From positions 56,916,001 through 56,980,000 of the forward strand of contig OZ241832.1 in the NCBI GenBank assembly GCA_965202585.1: a stretch of 64,000 nt of DNA. Direction: 5' to 3'. Under the pieces are notes generated by a model. The model was not told the DNA's origin and did no database searches. It was given only the letters and a program-made list of their open reading frames with translations. This DNA is from Thalia democratica. Lineage: Eukaryota. This document shows positions 4,271 to 53,038 of this stretch, in pieces (position 1 is the first letter of the stretch; each line of letters opens with the position of its first letter). Made by a program: the position numbers and the translations under genes.

Positions 4271-5347
4271 ACGTTTTAAGTTTGTAATTCTGTAAATAAT
4301 AAATACAAACAAATTAAAATAGTAAAAACTTATTTTAAAATTTTTATACATTTGTATAAATACGCAATATTGCAATAACATATAAGTGTTTTAAAACAAA
4401 AACAAAATTATTTCAAATTTGCAAATGTGTAAGAGGTAATTGAAATTAAAAGAAAACAATAAAAACTCTTTTAAAACTTTAGTTATATTTTTAAAATATA
4501 GAAAATAAAATAGGGTACGCAATATTGTTGAATATTAGATAACATTAAAGTTTGTCTGAAATTAAATAAAATCTAATAAACCGTTTAATCATTTGTATTT
4601 GTGTTTTTAACTTACAAATACTTAAAATGTTACAAATAACAGGAAAGTAAAGTAGAAGCGCAGTGGGTTTCAAGTTAGGTAAAATTCCCTTTTAATATTG
4701 TTTACATAATTTTGATATTTATATCCATGTTTACAAACTTATATTCAAATTGTATCTTGACCAGGGCCTAAATTTAAGATGAAAATTTAATAATGTAGTT
4801 TATCAAACGACAAAATTAAAAACGCACAAAATTTTTGGTCCTAAGACGTGTTATTCGATACAAAGAACCTTTTGATTATTGAGTCTTGCACGACGGATAT
4901 CTTTTGTAATATATAATAATCTTTATTTAACTGTAATTATTATATATTATAATAATATGCAAAAAAATTCAAAAAAAATAATTTGTGTATTAAACATTTA
5001 ATTGCATTAATAGTTTTTAAAATATTGCATTTTAATGACTATAATATAACGAAAATTAAATATCTCAGTTTAATTTTTTTATTAAAACTTTAGCGGCATG
5101 CAACATTAAAACGTAAAATTAAATTAAAATATTGCAATTTATATTATAAAGTTTAAATTTTCTTTGCTTATAATATAATATTAATATATATAAAAGAAAT
5201 ATACAAATTAAAGTATCTTTATAAAATATTTAATTGACCTGTTTTTTTAATTATTAAAATTTTACCATTTTTATATAATGCAAATTAAATTTATAGTTTT
5301 AGAGAACTATATTAAAACTTTTGCTGCTTAATTCAATTCAATTAACT

Positions 5348-6663: not shown

Positions 6664-8384
6664 TACATCTAAAGTTCTTAGACTTGGGAAATTTTGTAAA
6701 GTTGAAGGATTAAGAAAAGCGATCAACTGTTTCCATAAAATTAGATTTCGGCCGGTTCCAAAACTTTTATTTAAATTAGTACCCGAGTCATTATTCGGCT
6801 GGATACGGATATTGGATCCGGTTAATCGCTAGTTTGAAATGCTCCGGTCCGCAAAAGGCTAATTTTTTCCAGATCCGGCCCGTTGATTGAAAAACGTAAG
6901 CATGTTGTGTACGACTCGATAACCAAAAGGTTTGATCATACTCCAGGTATTTAGATCAAGTCTTTTAGGCGTTTCATATCGTTAGGTAAACACTATTATA
7001 AAGTATAAGCTTTAGCCGAATTTCTAAGCTAAATAAAAAACTAACAAACAAATCTTAAATATAAATGTTTATTTATTTCAAAATGAACTATTATTTTTAT
7101 CAGAAACTAAGCCTCAAAAATACTTTAACTTTAACCTTTTTTGTTTAAAAACAGCTTCTATCCATAAATACTTGTTTTTGAAACTTAAGATTACACTTAA
7201 AGCGTAACTACTATATTGACTGACTTGACTTTAGCAAAACATAATATTTATTCTAAAGTAGCTAAAAAACTAAAAGTAGTATGAAAGTAGTTTGAAAGCT
7301 TAATATAAAATTGAAAGTTTTATCGTATTATTAAGCACATACATACTGTGTGCAATATTTTATTTAATACATTTAATCTATTTATTGAAGTTTTAGTTTA
7401 AATAAGCAAGAAATTTTACGCGTGCATAAACTTTTAGAGAAAATAAAACAAGTTAAACTAACTTTATTGTTATATTAAGCAAACAATAGCAATCTCTGTA
7501 GTGGCTTTTTTTAATACACGTTTTTAATATTGTTAACACCAATGTTTTACTTTTGTTTCGTATATAAAAAAAAACTAAATAGAGCCTAGCAGTCGCCTCT
7601 TAATTGCCATGAAACGGATTTTTATATCTAAGCTTTATTTAAATAATCATATTTAAGAAAATAATTTCGAAACTTCCAGGTTTAACTTTTAAGAAATGTT
7701 CAAATATTTTAGAACTAATTGAATAGAAACTATATTAATATTTTTAAAACCTTAATTGTATAAAAACGATCTAGTATTTTTTTATATTAATTTTCAGCAA
7801 ACAAAGCAAACGAAATAAGAAACAGAATTGAACAAAAATTTGAGTAGTATCTTTACTATAAAAATATAGTATATTTGTTATACTTAATTAGTTTTAATAA
7901 TTAATTTCAAGTTGTTTTTATATATATTTTAAAAATGGTCTGTTGTTTAAACTTGTAATTAAAACTAAAAAAGTTTGATAAATTTTAGAGTTTAATTTAT
8001 TTTGGATAGTTGCATACTTATTATTATCTACTAATAATAATATTTTTTTTTAACAGTTCTAGTACAATTTTGACTAAACTTTGTTTTCACTAAATATATT
8101 ACTAAACTTTTTTTTTTTAATTTATTTGGTTTAAGTCAATTACATGTTTCATAAAAATAACGATAAAGTTTTGATATAGTGAAAATGTCAAACGTAGTTG
8201 AAATGTCACTAGTAGTTACAGTTTTCTATCTTTGCTTTAAAGAGCTTGTCTTCGTCTCTGATAATACCTGCAAAAAGTTTTTAAATGTTAAGTTTTTAAT
8301 AAGTATCTCAAACCAATTATGAAGAGTGAAAAATTTTTTTTTAATAGTGCGTACCTTACGCGGGTGCGTACCTTACGACGTCTT
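6664..8384 (+). repeat. Dispersed repeat, copy 2 (see 1-1663), ending in a doubled GTGCGTACCTTACG motif
   Basis: Colinear with 1-1663. Ends GTGCGTACCTTACG-CGG-GTGCGTACCTTACGACGTCT (8347-8383). Confidence 0.9.
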
Positions 8385-11604: not shown

Positions 11605-12789
11605 TAACTTTTATTCTAAATTTGGTCTAGATAAGGTAGTTCATTATTCTCAGTCTAGTCTTTTTGACTATTTTTTTCTAATTATGATTTTAGAGTTTCT
11701 GTTATCATTTGGTAATTTTATAGATTTAAGTCTGAATAATGTTAATTTAGCCTAACTTATGCATGGTTTAACTTTAAAGTTTATTTTTTAAATGTATTAT
11801 AAAATAACTTTTGATGTAACTCAGGCTGACTTTTTGTCCCAAAGAGTGGCAACCCTGTAAAAGGTTCAAAATAAATAGTGAAGAAAAACTTTTTTATTTT
11901 TTTTTTTTGATAAATAACATACTAATGTTTTTCAAGTTTTTATTTGTATTTTTATTATGAGTTTTTGTAAACTTGACATTTGTAAATTGTTCCTTTTAAA
12001 ATGAAAAACTAGAGTTAACTTAGCTGGATTAGCATTTTTTTGTAATTTCAAAAAATGTCCAATTTTTAGATCTAGTTATTTTTTTATATTTATAAAGCTA
12101 ACTAAGATTTTTTTAAAACTAGAGAACACTCCTTTGCCTTTTATTAAAATAAAATCAATTGGATTGTGGTTTGACTTTATGAGTGAGGACCATTAGAAAA
12201 AAAATTGTTTTTTTTTGGAAATCATTAATCTAACCAATGTTTTAGCAAGAAAATAGTATCTTTTTTTAATATTCTTACTTTGCTGTATTTTCAAGGGTGG
12301 GTGTTTTTGTTTCCAAATTTCTAATTTTTCAATAATATATACAAATATGCCAATTGTAAATTTCAAAGACCCTGTATTTTCTAACAGTCCTGTAGCATAA
12401 AAAATTTATAATTTTTTTTATTACTTAATTATAACTATTTTAAACAGTATGACTTTTATTTTTATTTAAACTGTTTTTATCTGATGTTTATTTTAACAGT
12501 TTATCACTAACAAAAAATGTTTCACTCCTATATCTGCATATAGGAGATCCTTAGTTGTTGTAAACAAATCTGAAAACTGTTTTATGTAAACATGACCCAT
12601 GCACGTTTTATAAAGATTATCATTATTTGAATATGAAATCCTCATAAAGAAATATGACTTTATATAAACTTTCGACATTTTTTAAAAATTGCAAAAAAAA
12701 TGCTAATTAAGCTAAGTTAACGCTCGTAAATAAAATTTATACTCTTAGAATTTCAAAAGTATTATATTCAATATCTTATAAAAACATAA

Positions 12790-13009
12790 GGGTTGATCAT
12801 ACCAATTCAATCATCAGACCACAAGCTGTCAGTAGACTAACGTAAAAGACAGGCAGATGGTTGCTTCATGCTTGCATGTATAAACCGTTTGTAGATTGAT
12901 GACTGCAAGTTATTTGGTTGAGGCTGCCTGATGAGTCTTAATCAGGACAAAACCGGTCTCAGTCTACCAAGGGCTTGTGGTCTGATGATCAAATTGGTAT
13001 GATCAACCC
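12790..13009 (+). mobile_element. Hammerhead-containing short element with inverted termini, copy 1 (Penelope-like pLTR / retrozyme-like)
   Basis: Left GGGTTGATCATACCAATTCAATCATCAGACCACAAGC matches the reverse complement of the right end at 35/37, with the match extending patchily to ~50 nt. No TSD seen. Homologous to 38548-38800. Confidence 0.75.
12914..12970 (+). ncRNA. Type I minimal hammerhead ribozyme fold, degenerate (G12A; stem I closing mismatch)
   Basis: GGCTGC-CTGATGA-GTCT TAATCA GGAC-AAAAC CG GTC-TCAGTC: core CUGAUGA at 12928-12934, stem II, palindromic stem III ACCGGT, GUC triplet at 12956-12958, and stem I extended by TTGGT/ACCAA. Confidence 0.7.
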
Positions 13010-13338
13010 ATTTGTTAAACTTGAGCTTTGTCTTGTTCTCATACAAATGTCCAGGCTTCTGATCTGCAGTCTTTTGCCTATGTTTTTGTTGTTTATGCTA
13101 TAAAATTAACAATTATTTACAATTAATAACAATTATTTACAACTAATAAATTTCCAACATTACTACTGTTTATAACTAAGTTAAAATTATACATAAAAAA
13201 GTTTGTGAAGCATTGCTTATAAACTGTGAAAGGTAAACTGCTTTTTTTTGTCCTTTCAAAAGATAATACTTGATTTTCTACTTAATTATCTATAATTTGA
13301 ATTAAAAAAGCTGTTACAAACAACTACTATCTAAGTAA

Positions 13339-36299: not shown

Positions 36300-39200
36300 A
36301 TGCCAAAAGTAATTAACGAAACGTACGTAATGCAACAAAAAACACGTAAGTTATTGATTGAGTTTTTATTTACTGTTTATTTTACTAAAAGTTTATTTAA
36401 GTTTTAATTCTTAAATTTAGTTTTATAAAGACCTTATCATAGTGTTATACCTTATTTTTTTAGTTTTTACCAGACGTTGAAAAATTATTAGCTGTATTGA
36501 TAGGGCTAATTGTCAAATCTTTTACTTTGTATTTTACTTGTATTTTATTTTACTAAAAATTTATTTAAGTATAACTTTTTTGATGTTCTTAAGTGAATTT
36601 AATATATTTTTTTATTATGTTTTGACTTTTTACAATACAATAAAAATTTAATATACTGTTTTAATAGATTTTGTTCTGAACTTTATCTTGAAAACCTTTA
36701 GCAGTATATTCATTTAATTATTATTTTTTTTGATTATTTTTACTTTTTTAAATTTTTATCATTTTTCCAGAAAAAGATCAGACGCCGAAAGACTGCGACC
36801 AGCTGATCACTGTGAGCATCAAGGAGAGCAAGAAGCGCAAGAAGCGCAAGATGAATAAAATATGCTCCTACTGCTTCAAGAAGAAGAGGACGCTGATCGT
36901 CTTCATCGTAATATTCCTCATCGTCGCGCTGGCGTGCACCTTTGTTTTGCTGAAAAATCGAGGTGAGTTTCGTTGAGGTTACGAGAAGCAGTTGAAACAA
37001 TTTTTACCTATAAATATTTAAAAATAACATTTCTGTTTGTGACTTTTATTGAGTTTTGTAGTTAAATTGGAATTTAAAATGTTATATCCCTATCAATATT
37101 TAAACAAAACAATTCTTTTTTTAAAATAACTTTGTTTTACAAAAATTCAAACAGTTTTTAAGAAATTCGAAAAATACTAACACCAAAAGCACCAAACAAG
37201 TTTATTCTATAAAGTTTAACTGTTTTTACAGGTTTGTTCTACAATAACACATCTAAAACTGACGACGAGTTGGTTTCCACCAAAAATCTTGCAGTCCCGA
37301 AAAACAGCTGCAGCCTCACAATCAGCAGCAAGTCGAAAGAGTTCCAAGTGAAGAAAATAATCTTGAACAAGAAAACTTTTGATGATTTCTTTCAAACCGA
37401 TAAAGAAAAGTTCAACGGAGAAAAATGGATTTCTCTGAAGAACATCGTCAATTCTGGTGAAAATAATAATGTAGAATTGAAAATGTTATACAAAAAAGAT
37501 TATGTCACAAGTAACAATCACGTAACAAAAAACCCTGATAATGACGTCACAAATGACGATGACGTCACAGTAGTGTTCCACGAGTCGTGCAACCGGCTTC
37601 TACCGATCCTCGGCTACTTCAGCCGAAACACTACGACAAGTGATCACGTGGACTTGCTCAAGCGTGACAAGTGCGATTTCGAGCACGTCGATTCGAGGGT
37701 CAACTGCAACTGGCGGGAAATAGTTCCAAACGGGGAACTCCCCTCAGTTGATCACGAGAAGAGGCGGGAAAGTTCAAAGAAAGTCCCTGTAAACTGCGCC
37801 GCTTTCCAAGGCGTGCAGGAAAAGGAGAACGTTCAGAACCAGTTCTTTGCCAAAGTGGTCGGCGACCCTGACAGCGGGGAGAAGTTCACCACCGCCTACA
37901 TGACGTCACCGACCTTTGACGTCACGGAACTGGATCACGTGACTTTCTCGATGCACTCGGCGATCCACTGCGACGGGTCGAGCTTGAGAGGTTACGTCAT
38001 ACCGGCCAGCAATGACGTGTTGGAGGAGGTGGAAAGTGCGGAGAGTTTTTTCGAGGTCGACCACGCCGTGTTCGGGTGGAAGATGGAGAAGTTCAATTTC
38101 GACGTTTCCACCCTCGCCGGTGAATACAGGGTCGGTTTGCTGCGTGTTTTGTAAAGTGTTTGAGTAAAAATGTTGAAGTTTTTGAAGCGCTTGCTACTTT
38201 TATTTTTTGCTTTAAAAACTTTTTATGATAGTAGTACTTACAAACACTAAATACTTCTGTTATTTGATTTTTGAATATTTTATTGACATATTGTTTTTAA
38301 ATATGTTATTGACAATGTTTAAACGGGCGTATAGTATACTTACAAACACTTAATATTCCATTGCATAATTTATTTAAAATGTCATTTAGTAGCTTCGAAA
38401 TTTAGCAAAACTAGTTTTTTTAAAACTGACAAATGAAGTTTTCAAAAAAGAGCATTGCGTAAAAGTTCAATCAACGAAATCGGCGAAAGTCTGCAGAACA
38501 AGTCCGGACTTTCGTTTGCCGTGAGACAAGCTCAAATTTAACAAAAAGGTTGATAATGCCAATTCGATCAGATGTCTTGCCTAGTGGACAATGTTTGAAA
38601 CGTTGCACGGCAAAGACAATGCTGACGTCACTAATCATTGCCAGCAAATGGTTGCTTCATGTGAAAGCATCATAATCCGTTTGTAGATTGACGACTACAA
38701 GTTTTTTGGTTGTGACTGACTGATGAGTCCTAATAAGGACAAAACCGGTCTCAGTCTACCGAAACTTGTGGTCTGATGATCGAATTGGCATGATCAATCC
38801 TTTTGCGTTAAAGTTATAAAGCGATTACAAATATTTATTTATTATAAAAAATATTACGACAACAGTTTAAAAGTTTAATTTTTTTTTTCTAATTTACTAT
38901 GTTTTAAGAGTTTTTCAATATAAAATAAGCTATAGTGTTGGAAAAATACAATAATAATTGTCAAACCATGTACAAGCTACTGTTTCGGACCACTATATAT
39001 TTAACATGTTTGTTTCCAATAACTTTTAATTCAGTTTAAACATTAAAATAGCTTTTTAAAATTACACTTTTTTGTAATTTATATGTAACTGAAAATCTAA
39101 ATATAAGCGTACAATAATTTTACAACTACTAAACAAGTTTGCAATAAATATAAACTTTAACGCTTAGGTTTTTTTGAAAGCAAGTGTGCTTAACAACCAA

Positions 39201-42156
39201 ACGTGCCAAGGTGACACCAAGTATTGCGGAGTTGGACCGACAATCAACATCGACGAAATTGTAATCGATGGAGGACTCAAGTGCAACAATGGTACATTGA
39301 TAAGTTTGTTTGATTACTTAAGTCTAAAAATTGAAAAAATATACGACTATTTTAAAGTTGTTTATGCAATTCTTAAACCTACATGTGTATAGTTCAGGAT
39401 AATTTGTTAACAGCTTATAGTATTTTTAAAAACAAAAAAAATAAAAAGAATTATTAAAAAAAAAAAAAATTATATGGATTTAAAAAATTTGCTGATATGT
39501 AGAGTACAACAACTTAAATCATTCAACGTCTTTTGAAAGTGAAGTATCTTACGTAAACTATATTTTAATTCGTTATAACAGAAATATTTGCTTTTTTTTT
39601 TAATAAAACCTATATTTCTGTATTAAAAAAAAGTTTTTTTTAAACCAAAGTAAAAAACATTCAGGTTCCGCGAGAAGTGTCAAGCATTCTTTTTCAAATA
39701 CAAACGAGAACGCTCCTGATAGGTGGGAGAAGACAAGCAACGAAGGTAAAAGTTTATTATATTCGTGTTTAGTGGAGAGTGAAGTATTTATCTTGTGATT
39801 GAAATTGTTGTATTCATTTTCTTAAAATTTGTTCGTATTTATTGAAAATATTTTTTAAATGCTTCTTTATATTTAACTAACAAAAACAAATCCATTCATT
39901 TTTTTTATTGAATTGAAAATATAGATAAAAAAACTTAGGCAAGTTAGTCTGTAAAATTTTTTTATCCTAAAACTTCTCCTATATATATTTATTTATTGAA
40001 AGAAATACAGTAGAAGTTTGGCCTTAATAACAAATAAAACTATATTTTTGTTTTCAAACTACATTACATATTTTTACTAAAACTTTTTTGCTTACTAGCT
40101 TTAAACTTTAACTTTGATTATTAGCTAGAGTGGGTGGCTTGATAATTGTTCAAATCATTGGCACGATGTGGCAAATCGTATTTGCCTAGTCAGCAAAAAA
40201 AGATTTTTATGCATGTTATTTTTAATATTGACCACTAAAAATTTATTCTTTGACCTATTTCCAATCTGATTGTGTAAGGTGGGTTAGGGATAAGGGTATA
40301 AAAAAAAAAAAAAAAGCATTAAAAAAGTTGCCAACTCATCAAACATGTAAATGATTTGCTACATTATGCTAATGATTTGCACATTTCTCAAGCTGTTAGT
40401 CACATATATTTTTGTTGATTTACGTAACTTAAATGTAATGTTTAATAAATATTAAAAATTAAACAAATATTAAGTTTAGTAACTCTAGTTTTGTTGTTAT
40501 AAAAATTTGTTTTTTTTTTTCACGCTTCTTCTATGGACTGTATAAAACAGTTTATTTCCTAACAATCGAAGAAACTGAAATTAACAGACTGTTTATTTTT
40601 TTCAGAAGAAAGTTGGCAACTAGAAGTTAGCACACGTTCACCTTCAGCCCTGAGCACTGGACTTTTGAAATCAACAAAAAATTGCTCGTGCAAAGTTACT
40701 TTCAAATTCACAAATAATGTAAGTATTTTTTTAACTATATATAATGTTTTTTTCGACATAAAAGCACAATTTTTAAAATGTAAAGTCTTTGCAGATAGTT
40801 CAATTTGTAGCAAAAAAAAAGTTGTTAGCTTTTCTGAACTGAAATTTTTAAAACTAATAGTTGCTTAACATTAAATTGTAATTTAGAATGTAAAAGCAAT
40901 TTAACACACTAGAGTAGTATGGAGAAAGTCTATTGGATAGTAATCACGATAAAAAACAACTTATAAATTTAAATACCGAAATAAAACTTAATTTTTTTAA
41001 TCTTGTTATCAAAACAATGTTTCACTCGTTTAAAATAAACCAAACGAGATCTTCAGTTGAATGTAAAATATTATTCAAAAAAAAACCAAAGTAAAACAAC
41101 TAACCAATCACAGAACCTGATTCGTGGCGTTGTGACGATCCGCTTGGAGCAGAAGTACGGCCGAACACCGAACGAGCGAATGTCGAACAAGAAGATATTG
41201 TGGAAAAGGCGACGAAGCGGAACGGTGGAGGTCGAGCTGAATCTGGTCGATGACGGAGTTCCCTTCGTGCTCGAGTTCGCCAGTTCCGAGTACGGGGGAT
41301 ACCCGGAAAACGTGTCGTTGGAGAACATCGTGTTTGTCGGCTGTGGTGAGTTGAATTTTTTGAATGTTGAATATCTGGTGTTGGAAACAAGTTGTTTTAC
41401 TTTTGTTACAAACTTTTTAGATGTTTTGTGAGTCAGTTTGAAAATCTAAACTTGCCAGAATAAATTTTCTTGTTAGCTTTACTATACAGTTAAATAAAAA
41501 TTATAAGAAATTTAAATTTACTAATAGTTTTATTGGTTTAAAATTCAGTTAAAAGTAAAACATTTTTAAACGACCTAAAGCTTTTTTCGTAATATATGTT
41601 AAAAGTGTTTGTTCCTTTAATAGGATTTTATTCATTATCTAGAAAGATTTTTTACTTCTCTTTAACAATACACATTTACAAATTATTAACTTATGTTGAA
41701 TTTTTTGTATATTGAAAATCAAATCTGTTAATGAAACTTAAATAAAGGATTTTTTTTTAAAGAACGCTTTTAATGTTTTGCGTGTGTTGAAAATCTATAA
41801 ACGAAAATAAGTTGTATGATATTTATCATTCAACTTTTTGTTTTGTTTCAGGTTTAAAACTTAACTTTAAGAAAATAGTTCACTTTTTAGCTTTGCTATA
41901 CATTAAAAGAAGTTATGATACATTAAATTTATTAACAGTTATAATGGTTTAATTTACAGTTTTTAAAAAGACATTTCTATTGACCCTAAGTTATTTTATT
42001 GTATATTTTTAAAACAATTTCTGTCTTTAGTAGGTTTTTATTCATTATTTATAAAGGTATTTTACTCACTAGTCTTTTAAAGATTGCCTTATTACAAAAT
42101 GTTAACCAATTTTTAAAGAAAAATAATATTTTTCAGATTTCGTCGAAGTAAAATGA
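36300..42156 (+). CDS. Type II membrane protein with MAM-like ectodomains, copy A (8 coding exons, 568 aa)
   Basis: Exons 36300-36345, 36771-36962, 37232-38130, 39168-39291, 39665-39745, 40606-40718, 41114-41345, 42137-42156. All are GT-AG with compatible phases, totalling 1707 nt. N-terminus MPKVINETY...KKRKKRK, then TM (TLIVFIVIFLIVALACTFVLL), MAM-like CDFE...CNW...SPTF...W...GEYRVFLKA...IDEIVI...C, a second MAM-like repeat ending LENIVFVGC, and DFVEVK*. Confidence 0.85.
38548..38800 (+). mobile_element. Hammerhead-containing short element, copy 2, in intron 3 of MAM gene A
   Basis: Homologous to 12790-13009 over the ~150-bp 3' core. Left GGTTGATAATGCCAATTCGATCA is an inverted copy of its own right end. 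It lies in ~900 bp of intron sequence absent from the copy B intron (~146 bp in B versus ~1037 bp in A). Confidence 0.75.
38714..38756 (+). ncRNA. Type I minimal hammerhead ribozyme fold (G12A variant)
   Basis: GACTGA-CTGATGA-GTCCT AATA AGGAC-AAAAC CG GTC-TCAGTC: perfect stem I (GACTGA/TCAGTC), 5-bp stem II with a tetraloop, stem III ACCGGT, GUC at 38748-38750. Confidence 0.78.
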
Positions 42157-51100: not shown

Positions 51101-53038
51101 CTTATCAATGTACCATTGTTACACTTGAGTCCTCCATCGATGACAATTTCGTCGATGTTGATTGTCGGTCCAACTCCGCAATACTTGGTGTCACCTTTGC
51201 AAGTTTGGTTGTTAAGAACACTTGCTTTCAAAACAACCTAAGCGTTAATGTTTATATTTATTGCGAACTTGTTTAGTTGTTGTAATATGATTTTTATAAT
51301 AGATAAACTTTTACAAGCGCTTCACAAACTTCAACATTTTTACTCAATAAACCAAACACTTTAAAAACACACTGCAAACTGACCCTGTATTCACCGGCGA
51401 GGGTGGAAACGTCGAAATTGAACTTCTCCATCTTCCACCCGAACACGGCGTGGTCGACCTCGAAAAAACTCCCCGCACCTTCCACCTCCTCCAACACGTC
51501 ATTGCTGGCCGGTATGACGTAACCTCTCAAGCTCGACCCGTCGCAGTGGATCGCCGAGTGCATCGAGAAAGTCACGTGGTCCAGTTGCGTGACGTTAAAG
51601 GTCGGTGACGTCATGTAGGCGGTGGTGAACTTCTCCCCGCTGTCAGGGTCGCCGACCACTTTGGCGAAGAACTGGTTCTGAACGTTCTCCTTTTCCTGCA
51701 CGCCTTGGAAAGCGGCGCAGCTTACAGGGACTTCCTTTGAACTTTCCCGCCTCTTCTCGTGATGAACAGAGGGGAGTTTCCCGTTCAGAACTATTTCCCG
51801 CCAGTTGCAGTTGACCCTCGAATCGACATTCTCGAAATCGCACTTGTCACGCTTGAGCAAGTCCACGTGATCAGCTGTCGTAGTGTTTCGGCTGAAGTAG
51901 CCGAGGATCGGTAGAAGCTGGTTGCACGACTCGTGGAACGCTACTGTGACGTCATCGTCATTTACGACGTCATTATCAGGATTTATTGTTACGTGATTGT
52001 TACTTGTGACGTAATCTTTTTTGAATAACATTTTCAATACTACATTATTATGTTCATCAGAATTGATGATGTTCTTCAGAGAAATCCATTTTTCTCCGGT
52101 GAACTTTTCTTTTTCAGTTTGAAAGAACTGATTAAAAGTTTTCTTGTTCAAAATTATTTCTTTCACTTGGAACTCTTTCGACTTGCTGTTGATCGTGAGA
52201 CTGCAGGTGTTTTTCGGGACTGCAAGGTTTTTGGTGGAAACCAACTTTTCGTCAATTTTAGATTCGTTGTTGTGAAATAAACCTGGAAAAATAAACAGCT
52301 AAGAAACATCGTAGAACTAAATTGTTTGGTGCTTTTCGTGTTAGTATTTTCTTAGTTTCTTAAAAACTCTTTTAATTTTTGTAAAATAAAGTTGATTTAA
52401 AAAAATAATTGTTTGTTTAAAATATTAATAGGGATATAACGTTTTAATTTTCAATTTAACTACGAAACTCAATAAAAGTCACAAACAGAAATGTTATTTT
52501 TAAATATTTACAGGGAAACAAATGTTTCAACTGCTTCTCATAACCTCAACAAAACTCACCTCGATTTTTCAGCAAAACAAAGGTGCACGCCAGCGCAACG
52601 ATCAGGAAGATGGCGATGAAGACGATCAGCGTCCTCTTCTTCTTGAAGCAGTAGGAGCAGATCTTGTTCATCTTGCGCTTCTTGCGCTTCTTGCTTTCCT
52701 TGATGCTCACGGCGATCAGCTGGTCGCAGTCTTTCGGCGTCTGATCTTTTTCTAAAAAAATAATAAAAATAATAAAACTAACAATTAAATGAGTATAATG
52801 CTAAAGCTTCTAAAAGCAAAGTTCTGAACTAAATATACTGAAACAGTATATAAAACTTTTATTGTATTGTAAAGAGTCAAAAAATAGTAAAAACTTTAAA
52901 ATACTCCGTTATGAAATTCAAAATAAAAAATTATACTTAATTAAACTTTTAAGCAAATAAAAAATAAATAAAAAACTCAATCAGTAACTTACGTGTTTTT
53001 TGTTGCATTACGTACGTTTCGTTAATTACTTTTGGCAT
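48109..53038 (-). CDS. Type II membrane MAM-like protein, copy B (8 coding exons, 567 aa)
   Basis: Exons (minus strand) 53038-52993, 52751-52560, 52282-51384, 51237-51114, 50731-50651, 49650-49541, 49144-48913, 48128-48109. Same phases as copy A. The only coding indel is an in-frame 3-nt difference in exon 6. Total 1704 nt. Confidence 0.85.

Follow-up and report, generated by a model that had tools for sequence, protein, structure and literature searches.

The intron considered here belongs to paralogue A, one of five tandem paralogues on the same Thalia democratica chromosome, and lies within a 64,000-nt stretch of contig OZ241832.1 that was analysed as a whole (the window). Paralogue A is on the plus strand, and B, C, D, and E are on the minus strand. 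D and E are found downstream (G000:C8:57002019-57002549 and 57020755-57021285) and share 95-96% protein identity in the exon. Three distant paralogues (39-41%) are located on another chromosome (G000:C6:69261771-69313808). The features of the paralogue A intron and of the element inserted in it are listed in Table 1.

The splice dinucleotides GT/AG and the reading frame across the 38130/39168 joint hold on the plus strand, and in the X1 contig the whole intron, element included, is spliced out. The RNA evidence comes from four runs that all consist of assembled contigs, from which RNA starts, ends, and strand are unreadable. With the ribozyme motif and the spliced intron both on the plus strand, the motif is in sense orientation to the pre-mRNA, as the original prediction had it. 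Spliced transcripts of the paralogue group, at ~95% identity, are found in the X1 marine metatranscriptome (covering 37461-38129 and 39167-39293), which indicates that this animal or a close relative was present and expressed the gene in the open-water samples. Contigs from run X4 span both element junctions without a mismatch; X4 may be the source sample of the assembly. Just inside the intron, at 38159, paralogue A is devoid of an 8-bp stretch, TTGGTTTA, that is present in B, C, and run X6 contigs. The flanking exons show no Pfam match to the MAM domain even at an E value of 10 and no sequence match in PDB. A protein-language-model search ranks MAM clusters first (score, 0.93), and the description of the paralogue A exon domain as MAM-like is best treated as a lead.

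Table 1. Features of the paralogue A intron, the inserted element with its hammerhead motif, and copy 1
Feature	Position in window	Strand	Basis or remarks
Paralogue A upstream exon (open frame), putative divergent MAM-like domain	37213-38130	+
Host intron (GT..AG) with element	38131-39167	+	RNA contig of run X1, record 3, joins 38130 to 39168
Left target-site duplication copy, GCGTAAAAGTT	38457-38467	.	Single in paralogues C, D, and E; twice in A
Minus arm of 103 nt, running from monomer 311 back to 209	38468-38570	-	blastn against the 328-nt monomer, ~95% identity
Plus arm, 236 nt (monomer 1 to 236), holds the hammerhead	38569-38804	+	blastn, 97% identity
Type-I hammerhead motif	38706-38769	+	Rfam HH9, 32.4 bits, E = 2.3e-6
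Helix I, GACUGA/UCAGUC	38714-38719/38751-38756	+	6 bp, perfect
Hammerhead core	38720-38750	+	Read directly from the sequence
CUGAUGA	38720-38726	+
Helix II, GUCC/GGAC, loop UAAUAA	38727-38730/38737-38740	+	4 bp, perfect
Core position 12, A	38741	+	Family consensus G, within CpG
Helix III, A15.1-U16.1, CCGG cap (palindromic)		+	1 bp
C17	38750	+	Predicted cleavage site 3' of C17; position from the Rfam alignment
Right target-site duplication copy, GCGTTAAAGTT	38805-38815	.	1 mismatch
Paralogue A downstream exon, open frame continuing from 38130	39168-39389	+
Copy 1, older two-armed insertion, related subfamily, A12	12783-13103	+	80% identical to the monomer
Copy 1, minus arm	12783-12838	-
Copy 1, plus arm	12853-13103	+

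The catalytic core in the intron is that of a type-I hammerhead: three helices surround it, and the structure opens at helix I. In the family consensus the core is complete; in the window copy it is complete except for A12 at 38741, which is followed by AA, A15.1-CCGG-U16.1, and C17. In hammerheads, G12 acts as the general base. Stems I and II are indeed perfectly paired, as had been predicted. The motif has a predicted folding energy of -18.9 kcal/mol (z = -2.9 against shuffled sequence). Its Rfam HH9 score and that of the family consensus (38.8 bits, E = 8e-8) are both under the gathering score of that model (52 bits), and at gathering thresholds Rfam yields no matches in the whole window. 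A related motif, likewise with A12, is found at 12928; the chance expectation for such a match is 0. The best-scoring model represents the amniote HH9/HH10 hammerheads (Rfam RF02275), which are likewise intronic and on the sense strand. However, those are single-copy and conserved, have a stable helix III, and are active as monomers, whereas the hammerhead in the window is repeat-derived, paralogue-specific, mutated, and 20 bits under the family threshold.

The element that carries this motif occupies 38468-38804 (337 bp), with an 11-bp target-site duplication on either side, rather than the interval 38548-38800 given previously. It consists of two 5'-truncated arms of a 328-nt repeat unit, joined head to head (5' to 5') with a 2-nt CA overlap, so that the 3' ends point outward. 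The hammerhead is confined to the plus arm; the minus arm is devoid of it and bears the ~70-nt "tail" end of the unit. An inverted repeat of 29 nt (90% identity) is found at 38542-38570 and 38777-38805 because monomer positions 209-236 occur in both arms. This arm overlap is what had been taken for an inverted 5' segment of ~23-27 nt; the inverted arm is in fact 103 nt long. The window copy differs from the family consensus by 11 substitutions in 337 nt (3.2%). Two motifs regarded earlier as its own variants, ATGCC and TTCGATC, both represent the family consensus, and copy 1 is the one that deviates.

The insertion is found only in paralogue A, as originally claimed: paralogues C, D, and E have an uninterrupted target, ATTGCGTAAAAG(T/A)TT..AAGCG, and no monomer matches in the corresponding intron. 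Once the element and one target copy are removed, A aligns to C, D, and E without gaps. Paralogue B, rejected as a decisive empty site, is a different case. The original prediction that the motif lies within ~900 bp missing from B is correct as to position, since 920 bp of A (38193-39112) correspond to 22 bp of B (51293-51314), but the insertion accounts for only 348 bp of this segment (the element plus one duplicated target). B has lost about 500-560 bp of intron sequence, kept in A, C, D, and E, in two deletions around the site; these make the alignment ambiguous and B uninformative about the insertion. As judged from the intron alignments, the insertion into paralogue A is later than the duplication of the gene family (A/C/D/E).

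The repeat unit is abundant in its own genome, where a genome-wide search yields more than 2,172 first-look matches, spaced at 328 bp within arrays. In the array at locus L010, which is flanked by a direct target duplication, 328-bp units are arranged head to tail and every one of them contains the core CTGATGAGTCCTAATAAGGACGAAACCGGTC with G12 intact. One of these units serves as the reference monomer, with position 1 at CAGATGTC...; on this scale the hammerhead begins at 152 and the predicted cut falls after 182 (182/183). The units show no open reading frame of at least 150 amino acids. The exact 31-nt core with G12 is found 1,516 times genome-wide, with part of the matches coming from a second hammerhead family.

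That second family is shorter (~230-250 bp) and has an identical 31-nt core (L065, L067-L069, L071, L072, and L078; e.g., L065:150-450). In place of GACUGA/UCAGUC, its helix I is CCUGC/GUAGG, which is compensating. Its similarity to the 328-nt monomer is limited to positions 148-182, breaking off right where cleavage is predicted. Of the sampled core matches, about 40% fall in this family, and G12A is seen there too. "Loose ends" at 38750 were considered as RNA ends and rejected: they occur in DNA runs as well and come from the second family, which diverges at precisely this point.

Contigs of the 328-nt family are also found in a marine metatranscriptome, where they fit thousands of copies. 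In run X3, a seawater "RNA-Seq" data set, a 358-nt contig matching 38464-38801 of the window consists of one 328-nt unit plus 30 nt. This is the length expected of a k=31 assembly that closes on a circular or a tandem unit, and the contig fits either.

The 328-nt family belongs to the animal non-LTR retrozymes, whose non-coding units, a few hundred bases long and tandemly repeated, contain a type-I hammerhead, and which have target-site duplications of >4 bp (PMC7229834). Non-coding tandem repeats of ~170-400 bp, each with a type-I hammerhead, and the lack of LTR, PBS, and PPT characterize the class; the units here are 328 bp long, and the target-site duplications are 9-16 bp across at least 20 insertions and 11 bp at the present locus. 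The family also shares with the metazoan elements described by Cervera and de la Pena (2020) (PMC7229834) a low GC content, a single type-I hammerhead per unit, and a copy number in the thousands. The window copy is very probably an ordinary dead member of this known class; it is unlike a typical non-LTR retrozyme in being a solitary two-armed fragment of 1.03 unit-equivalents with a dead core. The type-I hammerheads of newt satellite 2 and Schistosoma Sm-alpha cleave as double hammerheads (PMC4209133). These two repeats also consist of tandem ~330-nt units with a type-I hammerhead, but their sequences are unrelated to the present family.

A non-autonomous origin from Penelope-like elements (PLEs) has been argued for non-LTR retrozymes (10.64898/2026.07.22.740005), and PLEs are the presumed agents of their mobilisation. 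In published PLE insertions (PMC8557442), as in the 328-nt family, an inverted 5'-truncated copy abuts a direct one, tandem copies are partial, and only one end carries an extension, which is ~70 nt long in the 328-nt family. The likeness extends to PLEs with hammerheads in their pLTRs (PMC4209133, PMC8557442), which have the one-sided "tail" as well as the same minimal palindromic helix III, with expected action as dimers. In contrast to PLEs, the 328-nt family has no reverse transcriptase/endonuclease ORF between the repeats, its tail is ~70 nt long as against the 30-40 bp reported for PLEs, and its helices I and II are of the canonical 6 and 4 bp rather than of the PLE "min-HHR" form.

In 22 other distinct insertions (L002-L030), arm length varies between 28 nt and 2.7 monomers, and the target-site duplications are about 9 to 16 bp long. 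The two-armed insertions have, in every case, 3'-outward arms and a variable inner junction. In 17 of the 18 such insertions, one terminus is at monomer position 233-254 and the other at 293-321, with the two preferred places lying near 236-247 and 305-321, a pairing that independent choice of termini would yield ~7 times in 100,000; the termini of the window copy are at 311 and 236. Single-armed insertions end at 307-312 (n=3) or at 241 (n=1). The original prediction of variable, copy-specific inverted ends is thus borne out for the lengths of the arms but not for their outer ends, which fall at two preferred positions. Its preference for Penelope-type integration over a transposon with terminal inverted repeats (TIRs) agrees with the variable arms, their outward 3' ends, and the range of target-site duplications.

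Because the arms cross the predicted cleavage site (monomer 182/183) and their termini lie elsewhere, a monomer linearised by cleavage cannot have served as the template, which would have been an uncleaved multimer or a circle formed by religation. A snap-back origin of the two arms is rejected for the window copy, whose arms have only 28 nt of monomer sequence in common, and two priming events, one per target strand, would fit this copy better. It is possible, if doubtful, that cDNA synthesis from each target strand starts at a separate, fixed template position, the two positions being ~70 nt apart. If this is true, the thousands of young, short, readable insertions could make both PLE integration and the origin of the "tail" directly testable. 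With their clean target-site duplications and two preferred termini, these insertions are in any case raw material for work on Penelope-type integration.

Taken together, the segment 38468-38804 is very probably a decayed, non-functional insertion of an abundant non-coding 328-nt retroelement that integrated in the Penelope manner and acquired G12A by drift. Judging from published work, tandem units would be transcribed, paired neighbouring hammerheads would cut the RNA into 328-nt monomers, and ligation of the monomers would give circles. Copying of circles or of uncleaved multimers at a staggered cut in the chromosome would fall to a reverse transcriptase/GIY-YIG endonuclease of the Penelope type; with cDNA primed from both target strands, this would leave two arms, each truncated at its 5' end and pointing outward with its 3' end. 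These arms would be joined at the 2-nt microhomology and flanked by the 11-bp target duplication. Subsequent drift would account for the 3.2% divergence, including three CpG transitions, one of which is G12A in the catalytic core. As far as the sequence can tell, the ribozyme, mutated and on its own, is most likely inert, and the window copy would be a neutral fossil.

A different explanation of G12A, proposed originally, is that the ribozyme was active on landing and cut the pre-mRNA, so that the mutation was fixed by selection and rescued the expression of paralogue A. The sense orientation of the motif to a spliced intron and the presence of A12 in both window copies are in line with it, as is the reported depletion of Xenopus retrozymes from introns (10.64898/2026.07.22.740005). 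However, G12 follows C11.1 in the consensus and is thus part of a CpG. The core with A12 and otherwise identical is found 72 times genome-wide, 39 forward and 33 reverse, on all chromosomes; A12 is thus present at ~70 other loci, on both strands, and also in the second family. Within the core, a transition at one of the four CpG positions is seen in 173 copies (~43 per position), and one at the eleven non-CpG G/C positions in 290 (~26 per position). Outside the core, as scored in 24 other family copies, CpG positions have changed in 14.6% of cases versus 4.9% for other positions (odds ratio, 3.3; p = 1e-12), i.e., CpG positions of the family decay three times faster. In the window copy, the changes at CpG positions are at 38662, 38707, and 38741, all of them transitions, so that two more such changes lie outside the core. 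Taken alone, this copy shows no significant excess (3/34 for CpG versus 8/305 for other positions; p = 0.09). Six exact copies with the helix II type of copy 1 have CG (3), CA (2), or TG (1) at this place. Among copies of the 328-nt family, those with A12 are 6.5% divergent versus 2.6% for those with G12, a difference that is not significant (p = 0.10).

The structure of the motif also argues against selection. A hammerhead with a 1-bp helix III and a palindromic loop is reported to need a second nearby copy for cleavage (PMC4209133), and the transcript that holds the window ribozyme has a single hammerhead, which would be expected to cleave poorly even with G12. Any loss could also be buffered by the four other paralogues. 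With G12 in a CpG, CpG decay at ~3 times the rate, and a lone hammerhead with a 1-bp helix III, selection is not needed to explain G12A, and the scenario of a rescued paralogue is improbable. Accounting for 72 of the 173 copies that have a core CpG transition, G12A is the commonest core CpG change and exceeds the average (~43 per position); this leaves room for a small selective contribution, and selection may have added a little to drift. The locus illustrates how easily a CpG-borne core mutation is misread as selection and a two-armed retroelement as a TIR element.

It is less probable still that the element retains a function despite A12, such as some remaining cleavage, a role of its RNA structure in regulation, or use of a part of it as an exon. 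In favour of this, helices I and II are both intact, the predicted fold beats shuffled sequences, and family sequences are found in an RNA library, where they are free of the unique flanks of the intron. However, the RNA contigs, fitting thousands of copies, are not assignable to the window locus, and the X1 contig splices out the entire intron. In addition, A12 replaces the general base, and the element is absent from four paralogues and drifts like its neighbours. Least probable of all, and refuted by the two-arm anatomy and the variable lengths of arms and target-site duplications (9 to 16 bp), is a cut-and-paste DNA transposon or MITE, for which the 29-nt inverted repeat and the flanking direct duplication might be taken as evidence: the "repeat" arises where two arms derived from a single 328-nt unit overlap, the element begins (at 38468) 74 nt outside the left repeat arm, and in other insertions the arms measure between 28 nt and 2.7 units and are arranged in tandem arrays.

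With the 328-nt element read as a non-coding insertion of the Penelope type, its enzymes would come from elsewhere. A genome search for GIY-YIG domains yields 567 candidates; ORFs of 779-857 amino acids carry the domain at the C terminus and are often found in head-to-head pairs. Pfam recognises no reverse transcriptase domain in these GIY-YIG ORFs, and at three loci that carry long GIY-YIG ORFs the only similarity to the monomer is an unrelated old copy at L040:1231-1337. Likewise, four copies of the second family have no PLE ORF within 8 kb upstream. Locus L040, a match of the GIY-YIG genome search, encodes a 918-aa ORF in which Pfam recognised no domain. It has inverted arms of 378 nt that are 99% identical (4407-4784 and 7515-7892), one of them overlapping the start of the ORF, and looks like a tandem/inverted insertion of a Penelope-like element.
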